Source of the DNA: Adineta vaga
Lineage: Eukaryota > Animalia > Rotifera
Direction of reading: 5' to 3'
Assembly: GCA_021613535.1 (NCBI GenBank)
Contig: CP075493.1
Coordinates: 11,780,001 to 11,844,000, forward strand
DNA length: 64,000 nt
The stretch's first letter is position 1. Every line of letters starts with the position of its first letter. The position numbers and the translations under genes are program-made. Shown one piece after another: positions 3,126-64,000 of this stretch. The notes under the pieces are model-generated. The model was given only the letters and a program-made list of their open reading frames with translations. It searched no databases and was not told where the DNA came from.

Positions 3126-5239
3126 TTATATTTTAATGTAATACGTTAGAATGTCAAAATGATGTGATGCAATCTTTACAAAAAGAGGAAAATCATTTAG
3201 AGTAGTAGGAATATTATAGTATTGGCCACCTGGATAGATTTCTTTGGTATAATAATGTTGCCAGATGAAATTTTGTTCATTGAATTTTGGTAAGTAAACT
3301 GAACGTGATGTAGCTAGATATGTATAAACAGGAGCCACTAAATAATCTGTTCCAAACATATATTGATCTTCTGATTTATAAGTTTCACTATCATAATTAA
3401 AATCATAAAACATTGGACGTAGAATCGGTGTTCCATTTCGACTTGAAATATTCAAATGATATTCAATATAATCACGTAAAGATTCACGTAATTGAATTAT
3501 ATGTACAATTTGTGTGCTATATTTAAATAACCATACTTCATTATGACCACCAGAAAAACCGCATTCATTGTCTGGTAAAGGTGGATAGCGTTCACCATGT
3601 AAACGAAATAAAGGACAAAATGCTCCAAATTGAAACCATCGTACTAGTAATTCTTGAAATTCATCATCCAATAAATCAGCATGACGATAACCACCAATGT
3701 CTGTTGTCCACCAATAAATACCTGATAGAGCAACATTTTGTGCTACTTTTATTTGTTTTAACAATTCTTCCCACGATGAATCAATATCACCTGACCAGAC
3801 AGCTGCATTCAATCGATGACTTCCTATCCATGCTTGTCGACTGAGTGTAATGATGTCGTCTTCTTGTTCTTGTCTTATTCCATCCCAGATTGTTCGTTGA
3901 TGTTCTCTTGCCCATACCATTGCAATTTCATCATCATGCCGTCCATACCACCATTGTAAGCCAGGTCGACTTCTTTCCGGTTCATCTGCATCTAACCAAT
4001 AGATTTTAATACCATAATTAAAATAATTCGTCTTAATTTTATCCCAGATGAATTGTCGTGTTGCTGGATTGAATTGATCCGGAATATAAAGATTACCATC
4101 ATTTGTTGGTAGAGCACGTCCATTAGCACTATGAGTCAATAAACCTGTCATTTCCATAAACACAAAATTCTCAGACTTTTCATCGACATGAGGCCATATA
4201 GATACCATTACATTCATATTGTAGGCTTTTAATTGATTCATCATTTGTGGTATATTTGGCCAACATGTATTTTTAAATTTCCAATTGCCAATTTTCGTCC
4301 AATGAAACCAGTCGACACAATAACACTGACAGGAATTTGACGATCATAATAACCTTTGGCAACTTCTAATAGTTCTTGTTGAGTACGATAACGGTTTTTT
4401 GATTGCCAAAAACCTGAAGCAAATTGTGGTAATGGATTCGGATGACCAATAACATCCACATAATTTTTCATCAGAATAGGATAGAATAATGAAGAAATTG
4501 TTTCTTCTGCAGGTATAGTCGTTATCCATAAATCAAGTTGATGGGTAGCATTTGCTGTCCACATGATTTTTGTATCAGCTTGAACATCAAATGAACCGTA
4601 GCCTGGTTGATTCCAAAGAAATCCAAAACCTGACGTATGTATATACCATGGAATTGATATATCACCATTTGTTGGTGCAGTTGATGAAAAAACAAATGGT
4701 AAATGAAAATTATGATATGGTAATGTTAAATTATGACCATAATGATGTTGACCTAGGCCATATAGATATCCATTTTGAATATGAAGATAAATCAAAGATA
4801 ATTGATAAAGAGTGTAAATAGGTGAATAGATCGATGTAGGATATTTGTATGGTAAAAATGTAGTTGATTGTGTTTGCATAAGAATGAGTCCATCAGATTG
4901 ACGTTGAATTGCCCATGTTGTATTATCATCATTGATATAAAATTTTATATTACCATTGATAAATGTATTTTTATCTGATTGTTGACAGGCTTCTGTATTA
5001 ATGATTGGTTGCTCTGGAAGTAATGCTTGATAATCTGGTGTTTGTATAATTATGTCTGGACTAAGACGAATTCGAATACTATCAGGACCCCATGATTCTA
5101 CTTGTAATTGTTGTTGTAAACTATTTAAATAGATATTTTTAGTAAATATACAGGGTGATGTAGCATTAAATGAAATGAAATTTAGAAGAAGCAGTAAAAT
5201 GAACTGATAAGAATACTTGTAAGTAATCGATTTTAACAT
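3126..5239 (-). CDS. Secreted glycoside hydrolase family 31 (alpha-xylosidase/alpha-glucosidase-like), split by one frameshift near 4315
   Basis: Signal peptide; GFWQSKNRY; the frameshift restores VIVxDWFHW; catalytic WLDADEPE; WSGDI; WTTDIGG; RWFQFGAFCPLFRLHG; QYMFGTDYLVAP. Intronless. Confidence 0.92.
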
Positions 5240-20415: not shown

Positions 20416-21306
20416 ATGTGGATTCGTATGCAATTGGTGGTAATGGTGATTTTGCCTTTGATCACTTTTGGGCAACAATATGGAACGTGTACAGCAAGAA
20501 ATGGTCGTAAAGGTGAATGTATAAGCACTAGTAAATGTGCATCCAATAGTGGAGCATCAGATCCAGCAAATCTTTGTCCTGGTGATCAAACAATTCAATG
20601 TTGCACATATCGTACGTGCACAAATAGCAAAGGTGTGGCAGGTCAATGTCAACCCACCTCAACATGTACAGGAAGTTCTGATCCAGCCAATCTCTGTCCT
20701 GGTGGTAATAACATTCAATGTTGTACAACTGGTTCTGCTCCAACTGGTCCTAGTCCAAGTAAACCGATAAACACGATGCTTACAGGTTTAGCTGATATTC
20801 TTCGTGGTGCTGGTCTCAATGTTGTTGAAGTTGCTGGTTGGAGAACTCGTGGTCACGGTGTAATGTCATCCGTGAAGGGTATTGTTGTTCACCATACAGC
20901 CGGTCCAGCTTCAGGTGATTTTCCCTCATTGGCAGTTATTCGTGATGGTACTTCTAGCCTTGCTGGTCCACTCTCTCAACTTGGACTTGGCCGTTCAGGA
21001 ACTTGGTTTGTTATTGCTGCCGGTCGTTGCTATCATGCTGGTAGTACCCTTGATGATTCTATCTATGGAAATAATAACGCCATTGGTATCGAAGCTGAAG
21101 GAGTTGGTCTTCCAGCAACTGATAGTGGACATGGATATTGGCCCGAAGTACAATATCAAAGTTATCTTAGAGGTGTTAGAGCTCTCAAAAATGCTTATGG
21201 TGTTCCAACTGCTCGTGTACTCGGCCATAAAGAAGCAGCAGTACCAAAAGGTCGTAAAATTGATCCTAACTTTTCAATGGCTGAATTTCGTGCTCAACTT
21301 GGTTAA
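20416..21306 (+). CDS. Secreted N-acetylmuramoyl-L-alanine amidase (Amidase_2) with two N-terminal 6-Cys repeats
   Basis: Signal peptide; two C..G.C....C..CPG....CC repeats; LADILRGAGL.VVE..GWRTRGHG, HHTAG, HAG, IGIEAE, GHKE, KIDP. Confidence 0.92.
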   Translation: MWIRMQLVVMVILPLITFGQQYGTCTARNGRKGECISTSKCASNSGASDPANLCPGDQTIQCCTYRTCTNSKGVAGQCQPTSTCTGSSDPANLCPGGNNIQCCTTGSAPTGPSPSKPINTMLTGLADILRGAGLNVVEVAGWRTRGHGVMSSVKGIVVHHTAGPASGDFPSLAVIRDGTSSLAGPLSQLGLGRSGTWFVIAAGRCYHAGSTLDDSIYGNNNAIGIEAEGVGLPATDSGHGYWPEVQYQSYLRGVRALKNAYGVPTARVLGHKEAAVPKGRKIDPNFSMAEFRAQLG

Positions 21307-28427: not shown

Positions 28428-29408
28428 ATGACGAATAACTGGATGAATTTTTTCTTGACATTGGTAATTCTGTTCGTTGATGCGACATTAGCTCAAAATG
28501 GAGCGGACACAAGTGCTGGTATTAATAGCTTGGTAGTCATACGTCCACGATCGATGTCTGTCGATTTTTGGACAGCGGAAAGAATGAAAGCAGCCAAGGA
28601 ACCTGTTGCCGTTCCATCGGTAAACAATATGAATATCGGCCGTACTGTAGCAATACCGAGTGGTCCTTCAGTAACAGTTCCTGGTCGAAAACCCGATGCT
28701 TCTAGTCCATTAGGAAGAGTTCTCAACACTCGTGGTCTTCATGTAGCTACTACTGGACGAGTGTTTTGGTCATGTAGTAGCAATAGTCTAAGCTGTTGTT
28801 CTGCTAGTGTTGTTCCATCGACAAGTGGTGATGTTATTGTGACAGCAGGTCATTGCGTGTATGATACTACTGCCTTAAAATGGTTGATAAACTGCAATTG
28901 GATTTTTGTTCCAGCCTATTACAATGGTACTGCTCCTTACGGTCGATGGCCTGCGCGACAAGTAGCTGCTTTAAATTCATGGACGCAATCAAATCCAAAC
29001 TTTAATTATGATGTAGCATTTGTTGCTTTGTCATTAGTTAATGGAAAACATATCAATCAACTTACTGGAAGTCAATCATTAGGTTTCAACTATCCACGTA
29101 ATCGACCAACTTATGCATTTGGATATCCTGTTAATCTTGCTAAAGGCGAAGTTCTTCAATTGTGTACAGGAATACCAAGTGCTTCTAGATACACAGCAAA
29201 TAGTTATGTTGGTCAAGGATTATCCAATTGTTATATGACAGGTGGTTGCTCAGGTGGCCCATGGTTACAAAGTTTTAATGAATCAACTGGCAGTGGAGTT
29301 ACCTATTCAGTAAATAGTTTTACCTACTCACTAGCACCAAATACTATGAATGGACCAGTTTTTGATTCCAATATTCAAACACTTTGGAATTACATGACTG
29401 CCCGTTAA
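28428..29408 (+). CDS. Secreted trypsin-like (V8/glutamyl-endopeptidase-like) serine protease, actinobacterial type
   Basis: Signal peptide, propeptide FWTAERMKAA, catalytic triad TAGHC / YDVAF / GGCSGGPW, and APYGRW. Intronless. Confidence 0.92.
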   Translation: MTNNWMNFFLTLVILFVDATLAQNGADTSAGINSLVVIRPRSMSVDFWTAERMKAAKEPVAVPSVNNMNIGRTVAIPSGPSVTVPGRKPDASSPLGRVLNTRGLHVATTGRVFWSCSSNSLSCCSASVVPSTSGDVIVTAGHCVYDTTALKWLINCNWIFVPAYYNGTAPYGRWPARQVAALNSWTQSNPNFNYDVAFVALSLVNGKHINQLTGSQSLGFNYPRNRPTYAFGYPVNLAKGEVLQLCTGIPSASRYTANSYVGQGLSNCYMTGGCSGGPWLQSFNESTGSGVTYSVNSFTYSLAPNTMNGPVFDSNIQTLWNYMTAR

Positions 29409-51173: not shown

Positions 51174-53122
51174 ATGGCTCGTCGTTGGGTAGCAGTATCT
51201 GCAATAGGTTTTGCTGTGGTTGTGGCAATTGTGCTTGGGTTAATACCAGTTTACCTTCGAAAATCTAATAAGTCAGGTGAGTTTAGAAAATGAGCAGTCA
51301 TCCTCTTTCAATTGGACATATATTTTTTATTACGTCTGTTCCATTTTAGGAAGTATTACCGACTCACTGGACACATCATTAAATTCGCTTTCGATTTATC
51401 CCACTGGTTCATATAAAGCTAACATGGCTGAATTTACTCAATCGACGGAAACAAATCGTTCATTTCTTCCATTAAATCAAAGTTTACTAACTCAAATCGC
51501 TGCGATCGACAATAGTTCTTTTGTTTTCGAAGCTGGACGTGAACAATTTCTCTACTTTCGTGTATCTCAAGATGTATTTGTTCAACAACGAAGTACATTC
51601 AGTCTTAGTGGTATTGGAATACATTTTGGTCGTAAAAATGATAGCCTAAACGTTGTTCCAATTAATAATCAACAACAGTCATCCGCAGGAGTTACTATTA
51701 TTCCAACAAACCTTCCCGACAGATCAACATTAGTACGTATACGAATTGCCACTATGCCAACGATGTGTTCTCAAACAGGCATAGATGATTCATGTACAAA
51801 TGTCGAATATAGTGCTTATTTAATATTTGGAAAAACTCAACTGTCTAGTTCATCTATAATAAATCAAGCGAATGTGGCTTGTGGTGATATTTGTAGTAGT
51901 TCAGACAGTTACTTAGCTTGTTCAGCATTCTGTGGTGCTCAATGTGATGGAAATCAAGTTGCTGGTGCTGATACACCGGTATCGCGCCGTTATAATCTCG
52001 GTCGAAAATATAGTCAATTCAAATTTCAGTATGAGACCTACTCAATTCGAGATCGAATCAAAGTCTGGAATGATATCGAACTATTATTTGATAGTGGATG
52101 TGTAGGAACCCAAGGTGATAAAAGTACGTACTTGACGTTATCGAATAAAAACAATATACGTGTTGATGTTGAACCAAACTGTGCTTGTCAAAGTTTAAGT
52201 GGCTGTACAGGGCAGAATGGTATTTCACAGTTGTTTGTCCCGAAATGTGTTCGTCAAAGAATCAGAAAGCAAATAGTAGGGATACGGTGAAATTAAGCTC
52301 AGACGGTACGGAAATAACAAACGGTATGATATTATATATTACAGAAGATGCTGGCATGCCTTCTTTAGTCGCTTCATCGTGTGAAGCAGTTGAATGGGAA
52401 GTGCTCTTTAATTACCAAGCTAAATTTACAGGTGCATTGTCTTTTTCCAAGACACTTACTGGCCAATCATCCGATTCTTCATCGTTCGATATTGTTAGAT
52501 CTTTGCAAGGTGAAGTTATTGGTGGTGCTATTACAGCAAAATGGACTATTCTTGCCACGAAAGTTACTGGTGAAATTACCTTTAATATTCTTGGAAAACA
52601 ACCCACTACATACGCTATAATGAATTATATTGGAGCGCACATCCTCTATGGTATGCAAAGAATATAGCTGCACAGGAAAGTAACGGAGGAAAACAGTTTA
52701 ATAACGGCTATCCATTGTTCTCGGCTGCGCACGATAATGGATACGGCATTTATCAAATTACAAATCCATCTCCTACTTACAATGAAGTATGGAACTGGAA
52801 AGCAAATGTCGACAAAGGAATTCAAATTCTCAATCAGAAAACGAACGCCGCAATTACATGGATGAATGATCAACGTGCACAGGCCAGGCAACAAACTGGT
52901 AGAGATCAACCCGTCGATGATCATCGAGTTGGATCGAACTGTTTCTTTTCGGATAATAGCACTCGAACAATCGTAGATGCTGTAGCTATCAAACAATTTA
53001 ATGGAGCATCTGGTGGTAACTATTGTGCTTAGGATAATAGCAATGGCAAATGGAAATTTAATCCTCTGAACAATCGAGGTGAAAACTATGTTCTACTTGT
53101 ATGTAATCGAGTAGTTTTATAA
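51174..53122 (+). CDS. Type II membrane protein with a Cys-containing beta-rich domain and a C-terminal lysozyme-like (SLT/GH23-like) domain; frameshifts and a TAG at 53030-53032
   Basis: Exon 1 MARRWVAVSAIGFAVVVAIVLGLIPVYL; intron 51277-51349; FKFQYETYSIRDRIKV..LFDSGCVGT..VEPNC..WYFTVVCP; LWYAKNIAAQES..QF..GYGIYQIT..WNWKANVDKG..AIKQFNG..NYV. Confidence 0.65.
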
Positions 53123-53347: not shown

Positions 53348-56300
53348 TTATTCACGTTTGATACTTAGCATTTTAGCAACAGATTTGTTTCGTTGTTGAC
53401 CTTTTAAAAAGTTAAATTGATATATTTCTGAATGTCCAGAAAATTGAATATCAGCGATGAATGATCCTTGTCCAGTACGATAAGACTGAAATGCTTGTTC
53501 GATCTGTTTTTCTGCCATTTGTTCATGACGTACCCAAGTATCGTCTTCATTGCAATAGAACCAATGACGATTATCTGATAATGTGCGCACTAGTCGACGT
53601 TCAATTGATCGTGAACATGATGTTCTTGTATTTGTCTGTTTATTTCGTTGAAAATCAAATTTATACACATCAGAAGTATCAGTTAGACAGGAACTTAAGA
53701 GTGGAGTTTCAATTTCAGTAGGTCCATCATATAATTTCCAATGTTGATAAACTTTCTCCAATATTTCATTCATAGTATCATTATAGGAATGAAATTGCCT
53801 ATTATGTTGTTGCCAATGCCATTGAAAAGGTGACATCCATAAAGATTCTATATCAGAATAATATGGTATTTCAGTCGGAAAAGGTGAGAGTTGTCGATGG
53901 ATAGCTTGTCCATAGGTAACAATGAGTACAGGTAAATTAAATGCATATGTCCAATCGATTGGATTGTTAACGACATAACAGAAGTGATCGATTTTTGTAA
54001 TTTGAGTACATCGAAGAATAAAAGCAATGATCATCTGATTAAATCCAGTGTGATTTCCTGCCTTTTTAGTATAAGTATCTGATATAATTGCAGATATTCC
54101 AAAGTATTCACCGGGACCATGAACTTGATTTAGCCGACGATTTGGATCAAAGCCATTTTGACAAATAGGAACAATGGATTCAGCAGGTGAACCATGATAA
54201 GCAAAGAATCCTTTGGCTAAATCTGGTGGAGACGAATGACCTAATATTTCGTTAGCTTTGTAGAAACGCAGTAATGCTTGGTATTCTTTTCTCAAATAAG
54301 GATTTTCATACATTTGACCGACTGGTCTTACAAGTGGATCGAAAGGCCAATTATTTTGAACAAATTTTTTAGCAGCAGAAAATACTTGAGATAAAAATGG
54401 ATGATGTTTCTTTTCCTCTGCGACTTGATCACACGTTCGCCCAATATGAAGTTCATCATCAATGACTTGACATCGAGGACATACATTTTGACCACACGTT
54501 AAACAAATTTGATAACTATTATTAAGTCGTATAAGTCCGTCACATTCGTCATTCGGGCAGAAGACTCGATCATCATCTTGATGGTTTGTTGTTAAATAAT
54601 GATGAATAGAACTTTTAAGTAAAGATAAATATAGTTGTTCATTATTATTAAAGATAATTTGAATATCACGAATATGAATATTTGATTGACAAGCTTTGCA
54701 TTGAAGAGGAAATGTATGAGATGTGGCAAGCGCTCGAGCAGTACATCGACAATAAGTATGTCCACAAATGCGAAAAAAACTAGTCGAAATCGATGATTTT
54801 TGTTGACAAAAAACACATCGACGTTCTTGTCGTTCTGATGTTCCAAATCGTATCGTACCATTGTCATCATCATCTTCCTCTTCATCAACATCACTTTCTA
54901 GATCATCAGTAGTAGCAGTTAGTTCGTTTAGAAGTTGAAGAACTTCACTTTCACAAGCTTTCAAGTCCATCGATGAAACATTTGGTTTACCAATGAGTGT
55001 AATTGTCGCTGTTTTACGATTAAAAGCAATTGAACAAGCTTTTGTTGACCATTTGGAAGTGATCTGTTGTAATTTAACAGATGCTGATTTTTGTTGACCA
55101 AAGAATGTTGCGACGGTTGCACTGAGCTCAAATTCATAAAAACGTTCATTGAAACTTTCTGAATAGTCAGCAATTTGTCGCATCAAACGTCCTTGAGATG
55201 TTTGTGGACCTAGAATTTCAATATTTGTCCAATATTTATTTGGATTAATCGCTAAGTCTAATTCTTTTGCCCATTTTTGTATTTCACCAACATCTTCCAA
55301 TTCACGAAATAATTGTTTCTGAAGTTCCGTATTCAATCGAATATTAATCGGTGCAAAGGTTTGTGCAAGCATGAATGCAGCTAAACTTGTTTTTTGAGGA
55401 TTTCCATTACTGAATATACAACGGCATTTGTTCAGATTGGACATACGTTTACACTTCACTTGTACATCGAATCTTTGACAAATACCATCGATTGTTTCTT
55501 CAAAGTTTGGATATAAATCTATGTGAGAAATGGTAACTGTTGCCGAACTATCAACGATCCATGGATATATATGAGAAGAGAATATTTGTAAAGCAGCTTC
55601 ACGACTAATAGTAGTGAGATGAAAAATATTTTTACTTAGAAAAGATGATCGATTGTTTCTTGCAAAAGGATCGTCATTTTTCGTTACACTAGTTCGAACA
55701 GGTTTTTGTTTTAGACCACTTTTACCCAAGATAGTTATTAAGAATATATTATTGCATAATTGCGAATTATAGATAGCTGCAGCTCGATCACGTTCTTCAT
55801 CATTATGAAATGTTATTTTTGCCCATCCACTTGCATTATTTTTTGTTCGTCCAACATATACAGATCTAGGAGTAGGTCCATTACAGTTGCGAAGACATTG
55901 CCGAAGAAAAGTTTCATTGGTAGTATTTGGTAAGGTATTTAATTTAATAAATGACGCTGTCTGAGCTTCTTTATTTGTTTGTACACATCGCATTATAATA
56001 TCAGCACCATATCGATCGATAATATCGTTCACAATGACATTCGATGGAGTCTGAATAACCAATTCTCGAGCCCAACTTTCTTTCTCACTATCACGATATC
56101 TTCCGAAACCATCTTCTTCAACAACCACATGATAGAAGGCATTTTTAGTAATGCACGTCGAAATGTATCTTCATTTTTGAAAATAAGAAATACATTTTTT
56201 TTCTCTATGTCACGTTTTGAATTATAAAAACCATGCGCTTTGATTTCATTCCATTCGATATCAATTATCTTTTTAATCCAATCTTTTAAAGTATTTATTG

Positions 56301-59300
56301 TTTGACAAGGAACATTTTGAAGATGAAGTTTTAATGCATCAGGCATTGTATTTATATGTGTACAAACTAAACCACTTTGAAAATTCGCTTTAATCGGTCC
56401 ACAATCAAACAGTTCATATGCATCAGATAGTTTTTTTAATACTTCATCGTAAGAGCTTTGCTACTATAGATACGATAGTCGATTTATCTGTTTCTAGGCC
56501 CCAAATAAAGAAACGACATTGAGATCGATCGTAGGATAGACAAACCATTTTGCCCACAGTTCTGATTTGAAAGTATTTAATTTTAAACGCAATTGATGAG
56601 CAAGTTCCCAACCGATATTGTTCAATGTCATTAAATTTTGTATAGATGATTGTGCTATGATATCGGATTTTAATATGGGATGAAGTCGTTCAGTAATATA
56701 TCTTCCCGATGGTAATTGAGTAATAGTCATTGCCACAAAATGTTGATAAAGCGCACGATCTGAATCTTTCTGTAGTTTCTGCATGAATACACTAGTATTA
56801 GTAATATTTGCACGAATATCAGTTGATATTAATCGAACACCTTCGATTGGTAATTGTGGAACAAGTAAATAGCCACACTGTTCAGGAAAGAGTTTAGCAA
56901 GACAATTACCTATGATATTAATTGCATCTTTTGATGTTTCATGACCCGGTTGAAGCCAAAATGTACTTTTGATTTGTTTGATAATAGTTTCACACGATGC
57001 ATCGACATGTTGAAGAACTTTATTATTTAAACTATTTTCGTTACTATGTCTCACTCGACATATACAAGATTTAATGAATTTGTTACATTTTGAGCATTTA
57101 CCTTGTATGTTTTGTCCACCAGCATTTTTCCATCGATCATAAACTGAATAAAAATGAAAAAGATCACTTTTATAATTACGTGCTTCAACAGCAATACGTT
57201 CTTTTGCTTCTTGTTTCTCTTCTTGTGTTGTACCACCCATGAAGAAAACCGAACCAGGTGCTGTAAAATTGTCACGATAGCAACAGCTTGATCTAATAGA
57301 TTCTTGTTTTCAGTATAAATATCTACAATAAAAGCACTCAAACGTGGATCAAGTCCAAGTTCAGTAAATAATTCGCCTCGTTTTGTAATAGTTTGTTCTT
57401 CAATGCATTTCAGTCGAGTGAGTAAATCAAGAGAATGCTGAATAGTATCACTTTGTGGTTGATCCATGAATGAAAAAGTTCTTGGATCGAACTTCAATCG
57501 TATGAGTTGTAAAAGAATAAGATCAAGTGATGATCGAAGAATTTCTGGTTCGATATTTGATCGTATTAATTCCTTATCTTCATATAAACGAATACAATGA
57601 CCAGATGCAGTTCGTCCAGCACGACCCATACGTTGATCAGCAGATGAACGCGAAATACGTACTGTTTCAATAACAGTCAAACGACGTTTCACATCATAAC
57701 GAGCTTCTTTTGCCAGACCAGAATCGATAACTAATCGAATATTTGGAATAGTCAATGATGTTTCAGCAACATTCGTACAGAAAACTACCATTCGTTTATC
57801 TACTTCATTAAATTTGATTACTTTTTCTTGATCTTCAGGTGACTGTGAACCGTAAAGTGGAAATGCAATGCAATCGTCAGGAAGTTTTGATCTGAATATT
57901 TTCAGTGCTCGTTCAATTTCACCTTGACCAGGAAGAAACACAAGTGTATGTCCTTTATGTTGCGGATAAAGTTCAAGAATCACAGGAACAATATGTGTTG
58001 TAATAAGTTGTTGATCGGAACAGTTCGATGGTGGTGGTTTTTCACTTTTGATAACAGGAAATACGCGACCTTCCACTTGCAAAGGTAAACTACTAGGACG
58101 ATCGAAAAACTGAAGAAAACGAGTTGGATCAATGGTAGCCGAAGCAATAACAACATAAAAATCATTGGGACGTTGTTTAAGTAACAATTTCGAAATACCA
58201 ATGACAATATCAGTATTGAGCGATCTTTCATGAGCTTCATCAACGATCAAGACACGAACATGTTTCAAACTAGGATCATGTTGACTTTCTCGAATAAGTG
58301 CAGCATCAGTCATGTACATAATATCCCTGCCGGGTACTCGAGTTGCATTACCACATTGGTATCCGATTGACTCACCAGGTGATTTACCATCATATTCTTC
58401 AGCAACACGACGAGCAAGAGATAATGCAGCTACCACACGTGGTTGAGTACAGACGACAAGTGAACCAAAATGTTCAGCAGCATATTGAGGTAATTGAGTA
58501 CTCTTTCCACTACCGGTTTCAGCAGTAACAATCAGAACACGTTCATGTTGAAGACGTTGACAAAATTCTTGTCGACAAGATAAAATTGGTAATTGAGCTT
58601 TCTGACGATTCTTTATTCTGTCATCGAAAGTTTTCAAATCTCTTTTTCTATCCTTTTGAATTTCATTTATCTCACCAGGATTCCATTGTGAATGATGAAG
58701 ACGAATACAATTACAATTCGAACATGTATCAGGTTGATCACACTGTGGTGAACGTTCCGGTGGATGATTGAATCGGCATGAAAGATCACGACAATCAACT
58801 CCAAGTAGACAAAGTAATGTAGCTCGTTCTGGTGGATGCAAACATAAACAACTGAGATTGGTACAGTTCTTTTGATTAGGACATGGTTGAGGTCGAGTAC
58901 GTGGATGCAACTTTGAACAGTTCCATTGCTCACATCTAGCGCGTAGAGGACATTCTACAGAACGTGTTTTCGGATGTAAATTTCTACAGGTTAGCTTTAC
59001 AGCGATTGCCATCACGACACTTTCCTTTTCGTTTAAAAGGATGAGTAGCTGTACAGTCATAATCATCACATTTCTCACCATCCATACAAGGATTCCATCC
59101 GTCAGGATGATCAGAAGTACAGTCGACGTTAAAACATTTTACACCATATTGGCATCGTTTTGATTTCGTATTCGTCGATTGATCCGAACCGATAGAATGT
59201 AACGAATTTATGGATAGACACGAATCACTGGTAGTACTACTTGCGTCATCAGATTCAACATTTTGTTCCTTCTTTGTTCCATCTTCTTCTGTCGCATAAG

Positions 59301-59899
59301 TTAGTCTATATTTCGAGTTTGTATACATCTTACGATTAAGTGGACGTCTATTTTGTGTATCTGACTTTTCGATAAAATTTCTCGTTGATGGCAGATCTTC
59401 AAGAAAATATTCTAGTGTCGTGATTTTATTGGAACAAATCAACTTACTTGATCTTTGCTCGTGTTGAAATCCATTTTGATTTTTATTGAAATAATGTACG
59501 TTGGGGTTTGTGATCATAGTAGATGATGATTTATTTGACAAATCATAAATTTTTTGTCTTAATCTAGGTTTTTTTAAAGGTTGATTAACTGGAAGACTCT
59601 TGAGATGTATAAGAATAAGAATCTGTTTCGTGACGTCTCGATGATGATACAATACATTTGATTCTACTTCCTAAAATTTCAGCTCCTGACCACTGACGTA
59701 CAAATTCAGTTGCATCCTCTTCATCTTGAAAATCATTGATCCATGCATAACGGGTATTATTATTATTATTGGAATTCTTCGGAATAAAGACTCGAGTTGG
59801 TGGTAAACGAAGTTCTTGAGCTAGTTCATTGTAAGTGATATATCCAGGAAGAAAAGGAATTCTCACACTCCATTTATCAGATGAATTATTTGAAGCCAT
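53348..59899 (-). CDS. Giant RRM - CCCH zinc fingers - DEAH helicase - RRM/KH-like - RING-IBR - PARP-type ART - 2xWWE protein (about 2100 aa once about 6 frameshifts are joined)
   Basis: KWSVRI..AWINDF RRM; tandem C-x5-C-x4-C-x3-H fingers; AETGSGKST, TQPR, DEAH, SAT, FLPGQ, TNVAETSLTIP, QRMGRAGR; RING CVFC..CGH.YC..CKAC; IBR CPNDEC..CLTC..CPRC..H..C; YHGS..GF..HGPGEYF; WHWQ and WFYC..W WWE domains. Confidence 0.85.
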
Positions 59900-60213
59900 T
59901 ATCTATGTATTCCAACAACTTCTAAAACTATCATAATTCTTTCTTGCTATTTTTTCACGTTGAATAAAGAACAGAACAGAATGAATCATAGAATGGTTAT
60001 GTGCCGTGGTAAATATTGGAAATTGTTCTGAAACAAACCTATTGAAAAATATAAAGATGTCACCACCAAAGTTTCTAGTAAAAACAAACTTTATTTCATT
60101 ATAATCAAGATAGAAAAAAAATCAAAATTTACTAAATCTTAAAAAATATTTTAGTTATTATCCACATTGATGTAATGCGTTTTTGAACTCAAGTGCAGTT
60201 TATCAGCAAAGAA

Positions 60214-62087
60214 TTAATCTATTTCATTGGACGCGTTTAGTGATAGTATCTGAAGTTGTTCTGGAATTATCCGATAAGATTGTAAAGCGTTAGCATCATT
60301 AATGTCAGGTTCAAAAGGATCTTGGTAACAATCATGTAATAAAAATAAAGAAGGAATTGATTTTGCCGCATTGATTGCTTCGTAAGTTAAATTCAAGCAG
60401 ATCTGTCCATGACATTCCTGTAGCTTAGGATTAGCAGCTTTGACAGATTGTAAACTCCCATAATTGAAAATGATGCTATCGATAGGACATATTTTAACTC
60501 CTAACTGTCTGCGAAGCCAATTAATGGCTATGAATATAGTATACCAGGTATCTTGGGCACAAATTAACATTTCATTTGTGACATGATCTACTGGTACCAG
60601 CAGAACTGTTCGAGTACCATCCATTGGAGATACAAGTTGGTATTTAGATTTGCTGATCATACCGAGTGGATTTCCAATGAATAGTGCACTGTTTGATAGT
60701 GCACCACAGACGATATTGAATTTCTTGTCTGCAGAAAGTATGTGTATCATTTCTTGACATTGTAAACCTTTTTCAACAGGTCTGTCTTCCACTTTTCTAG
60801 ACAAATTTTGAATGGTTTTGTCGACTTTTATCAGTTGATTTGAAGAAGAAACATTCTTAAAAATTGTATCAGTGTATACTGATGCTTGTGATAATCGTTC
60901 ATTCAGAGAAAGTAACGAGAGTACACGATCATACCAAGTAAGAGGATGATAATGCAAACTAAGACGAGCCTCGTTATCGTTCGTTATAGTTAGTTCAATA
61001 CGGTATGGTTCGCGATAAGGAATATCTTCATTATTGAATACACTACCAACAAATGTCTTTAGTAGGACTCGAGCTGAATCAGCTAAATCGAAGCATAAAT
61101 CCTCTGGTCTGTTGTCATCAAGATTGAAATGAAACACTGTATCATCTAATTCAAATATGGGATAATCGGTTTGAGCTAATTTTATTAAAGGAGAAGATGT
61201 TTCAGCATGTGTTGTCGGATGTAGATATTTGCAATCATTTAGTCTACAATGACTACCAGCATGACATTTTCCTCGACGTTTACGTGGATGATTTCTTGTG
61301 CATTCGTAGTTATTACATTTCTCGCCATCCATACAAGGACTCCATTCGTCAGGATGAGCAAAAGTACAATCTACTTTATAACATGTGACACCATTGATAC
61401 ACGGCTTTGATCTTTTATTCTTCAATTTAGTTGTACTTGCAAATATGGGTGTCATTGGATATTTTTCAGCGTGAGCAAGTTCACATTTCAGATTTGTACA
61501 TGAATCGTAATGAGAACATCGTTGATGACGATATTTACATTCGTTACTTCTTTCACGACATTTTCCTTTATTTGCATAACGACATAATGAATGTTTGTCT
61601 TCTGCAGTTCGTTGCTTCATTAAGTTTCTTGTAGATGGTAATTCTTCAAGTAGAAAAAAAAAATATTTTCTTCCAGTTTTCCATTACTATGAGGTACCTT
61701 ACTTGGTGTTTCTCGATGCGGAAATATGTTTCGATCACTGTTGGAATCAGAGACACTTAGATGATTTCGTGACGATTCGTTACTAAATGCTAGTGATTCC
61801 TGAGAAGAATGAAGAGTCGATTTCCGTTCATTTCTTGGTGGTGATGTAACGCATCTGATTCGTTGTCCTAAAACTACAGCTCTTGACCATTCACTGACAA
61901 ATGTAATTGCTTCTTCTTCACTATTGAAATCGTTGATCCATGCACACGTGGTATCGTTAACAGTTTTCGGAATAAAAACTCGTGAGGTTGATAAATGGAG
62001 TTCTTGTGCTAATTCGATATAATTGATAGATGTAGAAAGTGGAGAGATTCTTACACTCCATTTATTACGTGAATCTTCAAATCCCAT
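60214..62087 (-). CDS. RRM - CCCH zinc fingers - degenerate HIT-like domain protein (paralog of the 5' part of the adjacent gene)
   Basis: The 59-nt intron 61644-61702 joins the 155-aa and 468-aa ORFs in frame. Motifs: KWSVRI..AWINDF; CRYANKGKC..C.YRH; PCMDGEKC..C..HP; VLLVPVDHV..IFNYG..CHGQI. Confidence 0.78.
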
Positions 62088-62785
62088 TTTTGTTTTGTAG
62101 TTTTAATAATGTCAGAAAAGATTTGTCTAGAATTAAAGAGAAATCTAAAAAAAAAATAGTTACAACATAAACTGGTGAAACAAAGAAAGTAAAACGCAAA
62201 ATTTTACAGGGACAATATATTTTTCTTATTCTTACCTTAACGTTTATAGTATGACGATAGTGCAGAACGATAAAAAAATAGGCATGGTTATGGGTATTTT
62301 TGTTTTTATTCACATTGCTCGCGAAAAAAGACATTCTCAGTTGATCTACACACCCACGCACAAAATTTACCGCAAAAACTTTTTCCCCAGTATTTTTAGT
62401 CGCTCTAATACTCTCAAGTTCAAATCACCAGGATTTTCTCGTTATTTGTTGAAACGAAAGAGGCTACAACATTTCTATGTTCTTCGTTCTTCAATATAAA
62501 ATCTACGAAAGACAGCGATATTTTTTTTTCATTCCATTTTGAGTCATTCTCTCTCTTTCTCGTCAAGCTTCCTTCTGTTACACTTCTGGGTATTTTTTGA
62601 TAGATTGCCTATATAAAGAACTGGAAGAAAAACAATCAATTCATCTTTATTTTCTTTCGAGTAGAACATATGAAAAAAATACTTCTCAATGCATTGGGTG
62701 TTTTAGTTTTGTGTTTCTTTTTAGTATTATAGATTGAAAAGTTTTATTTAAAATTAGAAACAGTGATCTGGTTAATATTTGCAAA

Positions 62786-64000
62786 ATGGCAACAAATGTA
62801 AGTCGCATATATATATTTTAGAGAACATTGCCTAGAATTTATTTTCCGTTCATTTATAGCATATTGACGAATTCGATCTTAATCAACGTAGACGAAAAAT
62901 CTTCATACAAAATCTAAATCCAAATACAACAAAACAATCATTAGAAAACTATTTTTCAGCCTATGATTTTGAATGGGTTGCTGTTCCAAAAAATGATAAA
63001 GGTACGATTTCAGAGTCTTTTGCTATATAGAAGAGAGTGTTGACGAAACATATTACAAAACTTCTTCTTTTTTTTCACAGGATACAATCAATTACATGGC
63101 ATTGTTACATTTAAAAATAAAGAAAGTGTTGATGCTGTTATGGCACAGCGCATCCATCGAATTGACGATAAAGAAGTTTTCATCCATCGATCCGTTCCTA
63201 AACAAGGATCAGCTAAGGATAGTTATGGAATCAAGAAGCTGATTGTTTCCACCCACAATAATCAATCATTATTGTGCGAAGCAGATATCGAAAATCATTT
63301 CTCATCATACGGTAAAATATGTGATATTGTTACGTACAATAGTGTTGAAAACACGTGGACCATCAATTTTGATTAGTAAGTAACTTGTGCGTGCCTGCCA
63401 AAGTGATTCAATTGATATTGTACTTTTTTCATAGTTATGATTCCGTAGATCGAATTTTATTGGATGCTCCACATCGTATTGGGAAAATCGATGTGTATGT
63501 AAAGAAAGGTGATCGAACGATGACACGTAAACGATCACCCACACCAGGACGATCAGTAATACATGATAATAATAATACATTAGTAATGCCAAAGAAACCT
63601 GCCATGAAACAAGTAACAATAAGTATGCTTCTTTTTCATTTTCTTCAATGATTATATTTTCTCGATTTTCGATTTAGATAGTGAAGTTTCTTGTTTTAAA
63701 CTACCTAAAACGAGATACTGTATACATATAAAAGGTTTACCAAATAATATCGACTCCGAGATTTTATCACAAAACTTCGATTGGGATATCTGTGATTTAC
63801 TCATGGATACTTTATTCGAAGATGGAACTTCACAAACTCAATGTTGGCTGAAGAATGCTAATGATGAAAAAGAAGTGGACGATTTTATCAAGAGATGGAA
63901 CGAGAAAAAAATTGATGGATTAGTCATTCATTGTGAAAAAGAAGAAGATGAATTAGAATTATGTAATAAATTTCAATATGGTCGATGTGGAAAAAATGAT
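62786..64000 (+). CDS. Multi-RRM (hnRNP-A1-like) + divergent RRM + CCCH finger protein; 3'-truncated by the window
   Basis: MATN^; introns 62798-62859, 63002-63080, 63376-63434 and 63623-63677; RKIFIQNL, HGIVTFK..HRIDDKEV, IKKLIV..YDSVDRILL..HRI, YCIHIKGLP..CWLKN..FIKRWN..IHC, ELCNKFQYGRC. Confidence 0.8.

Follow-up and report, generated by a model that had tools for sequence, protein, structure and literature searches.

Does a cluster of RNA-binding genes with similar front ends and different tails amount to a defence locus? The question is raised by the end of a 64,000-nucleotide stretch of the Adineta vaga genome (contig C1:11780001-11844000 of an assembly of 100.8 Mb in six contigs; hereafter the window), where two genes, A and B, lie in tandem on the minus strand and a third, gene C, is transcribed away from them. 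A preliminary description proposed that the three form a lineage-specific RNA-surveillance or antiviral system, in which a common sensor made of an RRM and CCCH fingers had been combined with exchangeable effectors. Here, we consider it reasonably probable that the three are RNA-binding genes that evolve independently of each other, with two of them going back to an old tandem duplication of part of a gene: gene A belongs to a larger family, gene B is a fusion to a catalytically dead HIT domain, and gene C belongs to a pseudokinase family. Genes A and C were searched by exon or piece and gene B via the database protein I4U23_003857; sequencing runs X6 and X15 are treated as RNA-type because their contigs skip introns.

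The relationship between genes A and B was described correctly at the outset: they share a homologous N-terminus, consisting of an RRM and a CCCH array, and diverge completely thereafter. Gene B (I4U23_003857, 62087-60214, minus strand) encodes 604 amino acids in an intact frame. Its exon 1 (61703-62087) carries an RRM that is about 55% identical to that of gene A over 85 codons and that the tree places inside the clade formed by gene A with its nearest paralogs (support 98/89). The following 59-nucleotide intron (61644-61702) occupies the same position as the 51-nucleotide intron of gene A (59397-59447); both are of phase 1, as first reported, and have GT-AG borders. RNA-type contigs skip the intron of gene B in X6 and X15 and that of gene A in X6. 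Next come five CCCH fingers (61221-61584) with all ligands kept; by sequence comparison, these include an N-terminal pair that has been lost from A. vaga gene A and is retained in the Rotaria sordida homolog. The similarity to gene A stops after the fifth finger, and about 15 residues on, in the same exon, an unrelated domain begins (60214-61176), which fold matches identify as a two-repeat, GalT-like HIT-fold domain. By contrast, the corresponding part of gene A has Pfam matches to DEAD, Helicase_C, IBR, PARP and WWE. The fusion point thus lies near 61180-61220, within exon 2. The intron and the fusion point are both bridged by a spliced contig (60842-61950), and a contig from DNA reaches from 60179 to 61950; these contigs across the fusion point rule out a misassembly. 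Because the break in similarity is inside an exon and there is no intron there, the joining occurred at the DNA level, and exon shuffling is ruled out as the origin of gene B. In other words, gene B is a real chimera and a real effector swap, and it is expressed.

The chimera is also old. The synonymous divergence (dS) between genes B and A is 0.66 in the RRM and 1.26 in the fingers, which equals or exceeds the values for orthologs of A. vaga and A. steineri (0.45-0.89), and the ratio of non-synonymous to synonymous substitution rates (dN/dS) is 0.25-0.47 for gene B against gene A and its orthologs. The large dS and low dN/dS together argue that gene B is an old duplicate under purifying selection. 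Across RRM, finger and C-terminal parts, all dN/dS values lie between 0.17 and 0.50 and none exceeds 1, as judged by pairwise tests. Full-length orthologs of gene B were not found outside A. vaga in a word-seeded search, which is weak because it missed a 40%-identical Rotaria protein. Gene B is of interest as a clean, datable new gene that combines an RNA-recognition module with a pseudo-enzyme and has been kept under selection in an asexual animal.

The assignment of the C-terminal half of gene B to the HIT fold is based on structure. The full model of the domain has a predicted local distance difference test score (pLDDT) of 84 and a predicted template modelling score (pTM) of 0.85. For a core model, the top 20 fold matches are all HIT-fold proteins (Z up to 7.1), with DcpS and aprataxin among the fold neighbours. 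The full model matches GalT over both halves (model residues 1-285, 189 aligned) with a middling Z of 8.8 and a root-mean-square deviation of 4.7. Sequence identity to these HIT-superfamily matches is 8-10%. Pfam gave no HIT match for the domain and 19 relatives, and feature searches returned no usable lead for the domain itself and, for one relative (P0007), HIT-like leads that are all under 0.8. At E-values up to 0.001, the domain has 22 relatives, which come from bdelloids, Paraphysoderma, Phlyctochytrium and environmental sequences. In a viral structure library, the best matches by a wide margin are two Sylvanvirus proteins (E 3e-16, template modelling score (TM) 0.75, 17% identity; and E 2e-13); Sylvanvirus is an uncultured giant virus from soil (PMC6243002). 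A search of IMG/VR for the family by DNA pattern yielded no confirmed member. This two-repeat HIT-fold family has no name and no Pfam model and is new here; with its internal CCCH finger, it occurs in bdelloids, in fungi of early-branching lineages, in environmental eukaryotes and probably also in a giant virus.

HIT enzymes carry a catalytic HxHxH or HxHxQ motif. In gene B the triad reads HGQIC (codons 60411-60399), i.e. Gln has replaced the nucleophilic His and Cys the third His, and a read variant at 60405 turns the Gln into Glu. In most relatives HxHxH is intact, and many possess an internal CCCH finger, which gene B lacks. The sole other family member in the A. vaga genome (C3:18193367-18194176; L023:1108-2052) has an intact triad, HAHVH. 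In Rotaria strain Silwood1, two tandem stand-alone copies have the triad HGQIS and group with gene B (96 in the Shimodaira-Hasegawa-like approximate likelihood ratio test, SH-aLRT), and neither an RRM nor a finger array is nearby. Because the stand-alone Rotaria domain is already dead and groups with gene B, the catalytic loss predates the fusion. The two Rotaria genes flank a gene resembling an E2 ubiquitin-conjugating enzyme (L024:6519-7082). Some HIT proteins bind zinc; C424, C441, H482 and H540, which are conserved in gene B, are candidate ligands and could form a putative structural zinc site.

Gene A (59899-53348, minus strand) has the layout RRM-7xCCCH-DEAH-RING1-IBR-ART-2xWWE, without RING2. 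In the reference it is split into six frames with six frame breaks. Compensating indels at 59593, 58989, 57263, 56534, 56461-56462 and 56134 occur in two independent DNA runs, five of the six are among those listed for an RNA-type run, and their sizes add up, by length arithmetic only, to an open frame of 2169 amino acids. The six frame breaks are assembly errors; none of them appears in the Illumina contigs from independent runs, which rules out that gene A is a pseudogene. Since gene A is broken at six places in the reference assembly, the annotation of the locus is likely wrong. Exon 1 (59448-59899) contains the ATG, an atypical N-terminal RRM (59639-59878) and a linker, and it is in this exon that 5 nucleotides are missing from the reference at 59593. 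After the intron follow seven fingers of the C-x5-C-x4-C-x3-H type (58695-59154, with the reference indel at 58989) and a DEAH helicase core (57609-58571; Pfam DEAD and Helicase_C) in which the Walker A and DEAH motifs are intact. An HA2/OB-like region and a long middle region with a weak RRM match (54902-57608) contain the reference indels at 57263, 56534, 56461 and 56134. The RING1-like finger and the IBR (54431-54820) rest on a motif reading and on Pfam, respectively, and the homolog P0072 has a Pfam RING match. A RING2 (Rcat) with its catalytic cysteine was not found in gene A, where the IBR abuts the ART region, as it does in homologs with a located IBR. The ART/PARP-like domain (approximately 53915-54330) has its best PDB sequence matches to PARP15 and PARP10, which are weak (E 0.03-0.1); by motif reading, the His and Tyr of the H-Y-E triad are kept and Cys stands at the Glu position, in gene A and in its bdelloid homologs. 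Two WWE domains, seen as two stretches of Pfam matches, and the stop codon complete the gene (53348-53830).

This architecture is not lineage-specific, as had been proposed. Over the RRM, helicase and C-terminal pieces, gene A shares 64-75% identity with its nearest homologs, which come from A. steineri, R. sordida and R. magnacalcarata; dN/dS against these orthologs is about 0.3. The RING-IBR-ART tail occurs in six copies in A. vaga, gene A included, and is common to 47 database proteins from Adineta, Rotaria and Didymodactylos; the whole CCCH-DEAH-ART-WWE layout also occurs in one Picozoa protein. Thus, with its bdelloid-wide and Picozoa occurrence, the family is old. A query with the fingers against metagenomes returned three loci, all of the helicase type. 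A literature search for the architecture found no paper.

How freely does the sensor part move between partners? A profile search of the A. vaga genome returned 12 strong RRMs of the gene A type, of which seven are on helicase genes, two on ART-only genes, one on a macro-PARP gene (C5:3.95 Mb), one on gene B and one on an RRM-only exon just upstream of one of the ART-only genes. Six of the seven helicase genes have the RING-IBR-ART tail and one (C3:13.51 Mb) has no detected ART tail. This last paralog (C3:13.510-13.513 Mb) reads RRM-CCCH-DEAH, with no middle region, RING-IBR or ART tail detected, and is truncated or has another tail. The ART-only genes are at C3:3660242 (L016) and C6:13288-13289 kb (L017), the latter with two tandem RRM exons; we take both proteins to be NEURL4-like by motif, and one has a Pfam PARP match (E 0.02). 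In short, the A-type RRM serves repeatedly as an N-terminal cap, mostly on ART proteins. By contrast, the complete module of RRM and fingers is on a helicase in six of its seven copies and on a HIT domain in one. Gene B is thus the one real effector swap, next to a broader reuse of the RRM on the ART-only and macro-PARP proteins; the architecture of gene C is fixed.

Gene C is divergently transcribed, as first described. The intergenic region that it shares head-to-head with gene B (62088-62785) measures 699 bp from ATG to ATG. Its 5' part (62786-64000, plus strand) encodes two canonical RRMs, an atypical RRM (63710-63943) and the first CCCH finger, with introns, predicted only, at 62798-62859, 63002-63080, 63376-63434 and 63623-63677. 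The gene extends about 2.2 kb past the window, where it adds a second finger, one more atypical RRM, a pseudokinase and a C-terminal domain; the kinase motifs HRD and DFG are replaced by HQN and NFN, and most paralogs have HxN. The atypical RRM does match the profile of genes A and B (97.4% and E 1.3e-11 in hhalign; E 1.5e-7 with a hidden Markov model), but at 20% identity, and RRMs of this type form a separate long-branch clade. The family has at least eight copies at seven sites, at all of which the atypical RRM and fingers precede a kinase-like region, and no partner swapping was seen across these seven A. vaga sites. Thus, a shared sensor exists in genes A and B, and gene C falls outside it. 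Two paralogs lie in tandem at C5:4130-4136 kb (L056, L065), and one of them, with HRD and DYG, may be an active kinase.

Nor is the cluster itself conserved. The survey covered the 10-kb flanks of nine homologous helicase loci, from other bdelloids and from metagenomes; a B- or C-type gene is present at none of the nine, and all neighbours differ. In A. vaga, one of the seven C-type sites adjoins an A-type gene, and the adjacency of gene C is local to A. vaga. A conserved three-gene defence locus is not supported by these data. A helicase-ART gene of A. steineri has an RRM-NYN ribonuclease-like gene as its head-to-head neighbour, about 860 bp away (L069:4583-9137); the neighbour is unrelated to gene C, yet it is again an RNA-binding gene divergent from the helicase-ART family. 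None of the searches placed a member of the A, B or C family on contig C4, presumably the homoeologue of C1, and the locus may lack an ohnologue.

We suggest the following model for the three genes. In gene A, the RRM and fingers would bind RNA, which the helicase would remodel; RING1-IBR would recruit an E2, with RBR-type transfer being impossible without RING2; and the ART, which without the catalytic Glu may be a mono-ART or inactive, would together with two WWE readers connect the protein to ADP-ribose signalling. A role in defence is plausible for gene A, given its domain content, copy number and shifting neighbourhoods. Gene B originated when the 5' part of a gene A ancestor (RRM, intron and five fingers) was joined, within an exon, to an existing gene whose GalT-like HIT domain was already dead. 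Gene B is most likely a non-catalytic adaptor or competitor; it may bind RNAs like those of gene A and hold, but not cleave, a nucleotide group, which might be cap-like, adenylylated or nucleotide-sugar-like. Gene C would be an RNA-binding pseudokinase scaffold.

Several observations weigh against three independent genes with a functional gene B. For conserved genes, dN/dS is fairly high. The presence of the A-type RRM on several ART proteins would suit a mobile sensor, and only 0.7 kb separate gene C from a gene with such an RRM, whereas a post hoc calculation gives a chance expectation of about 0.007 pairs of this kind within 5 kb. The last two points favour a co-regulated, modular RNA-sensing defence locus with one sensor, three effectors (helicase-ART, HIT-like and pseudokinase) and a bidirectional promoter between genes B and C, as do the giant-virus fold matches of the HIT family. 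Moreover, RRM, KH, macro, WWE and ART domains mark the antiviral PARP14 and PARP9-DTX3L (PMC11251020, PMC12505956). We nevertheless regard such a locus as unlikely: the cluster is not conserved at the helicase loci surveyed, the gene C family keeps its partners and has a distant RRM, the motifs mark two of the three effectors as catalytically dead, and no pairwise dN/dS value is above 1. A more elaborate version, which we consider very improbable, makes gene B an integrated decoy or trap, in which a dead copy of a GalT-like HIT enzyme family that giant viruses seem to share, on its gene A-type front end, captures, on RNA, the nucleotide product or partner of a pathogen HIT enzyme and passes it to gene A, with gene C co-expressed via the shared promoter.

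Other observations bear on whether gene B matters to the cell at all. Among the 40 of 105 read variants listed, non-synonymous changes account for 10 of 14 in exon 2 of gene B (4 being synonymous), which is near the neutral ratio, versus 7 of 17 in gene A, a difference that is not significant (Fisher p 0.15). Together with the dead triad and the occurrence of gene B in A. vaga only, within the limits of the searches, this would suit a near-neutral, decaying chimera that is transcribed from a copied gene A promoter and has an open frame and no current role. An ortholog may, however, be hidden in another Adineta, as the searches miss 40%-identical members or hide those above 50% identity. Decay is also hard to reconcile with the age of the duplication, the intact frame at a dN/dS well below 1, the finger and candidate zinc ligands that have been kept and a well-folded model, and it appears distinctly unlikely to us. 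Finally, all three genes could serve housekeeping or stress RNA metabolism, such as RNA-end turnover or repair after desiccation or radiation, unrelated to pathogens. The DcpS and aprataxin neighbours of the HIT domain point this way, as do the CCCH finger that intact HIT family members carry themselves and the stress response of ADP-ribosylation genes in A. vaga (PMC12220480). Patchy distribution, several paralogs, variable neighbourhoods and giant-virus matches would be unusual for such genes, and we consider this account possible but rather doubtful. Accordingly, we retain three independently evolving RNA-binding genes as the favoured explanation.

Elsewhere in the window, a plus-strand gene just downstream of gene A (51277-53032) is spread over several frames, has no domains assigned and was not found beside gene A homologs. 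Three further genes were possibly acquired horizontally: a GH31 glycosidase-like gene (3126-5239), split over two frames, perhaps by an assembly indel; a bacterial-type amidase-like gene (20416-21306); and a serine protease-like gene (28428-29408).

Among known systems, gene B invites comparison with fusions in which a dead enzyme domain is attached to a receptor-like front end, as in the integrated decoys of NLR-ID proteins, and with conflict systems that have a constant sensor. It differs from these in that it lacks a signalling or effector domain and occurs once. Its C-terminal domain resembles the GalT branch of the HIT superfamily (GalT and ADP-glucose phosphorylase, next to HINT, Fhit, DcpS and aprataxin) in fold and in the two repeats found in GalT; by contrast, it has no Pfam match, low identity and a dead triad, and its intact relatives have an internal CCCH finger. 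The closest models are the uncharacterised Sylvanvirus proteins.

For gene A, the preliminary description had drawn a parallel to ZAP/PARP13 and PARP12, which likewise have CCCH fingers, WWE and ART in one chain. The parallel fails on finger type, as gene A fingers have only weak zf-CCCH_tandem and Nab2-type Pfam matches and no ZAP-type model, and on domain order, which is CCCH-WWE-ART in those proteins and DEAH-RING1-IBR-ART-WWE-WWE in gene A. Moreover, gene A adds an RRM, a helicase and RING-IBR, and genes B and C have neither ART nor WWE. Arabidopsis DEAH11/12 are members of the Helicase (Plant I) subfamily of RBR ubiquitin ligases. This subfamily is ancient and patchily retained (Marin 2010, PMC2904391). 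Its members share with gene A a DEAH helicase with RING1-IBR far downstream; in gene A, however, RING2 is replaced by ART-WWE-WWE and a CCCH array precedes the helicase. Without RING2, gene A is outside this subfamily, though clearly similar to it. RRMs also head PARP14 and PARP10 and, like gene A, PARP14, PARP10 and PARP9-DTX3L have RRMs on mono-ART proteins and couple domains for ubiquitin and ADP-ribose, but lack helicase and IBR; their interferon induction has, to our knowledge, no rotifer equivalent. The probable logic of gene A, an RNA-binding helicase platform with E2 recruitment and ADP-ribose reading, is comparable to that of PARP9-DTX3L and the Deltex ligases, and its family, with half an RBR between helicase and ART-WWE, offers a place to study RNA sensing tied to ADP-ribose and ubiquitin in invertebrates without interferon.

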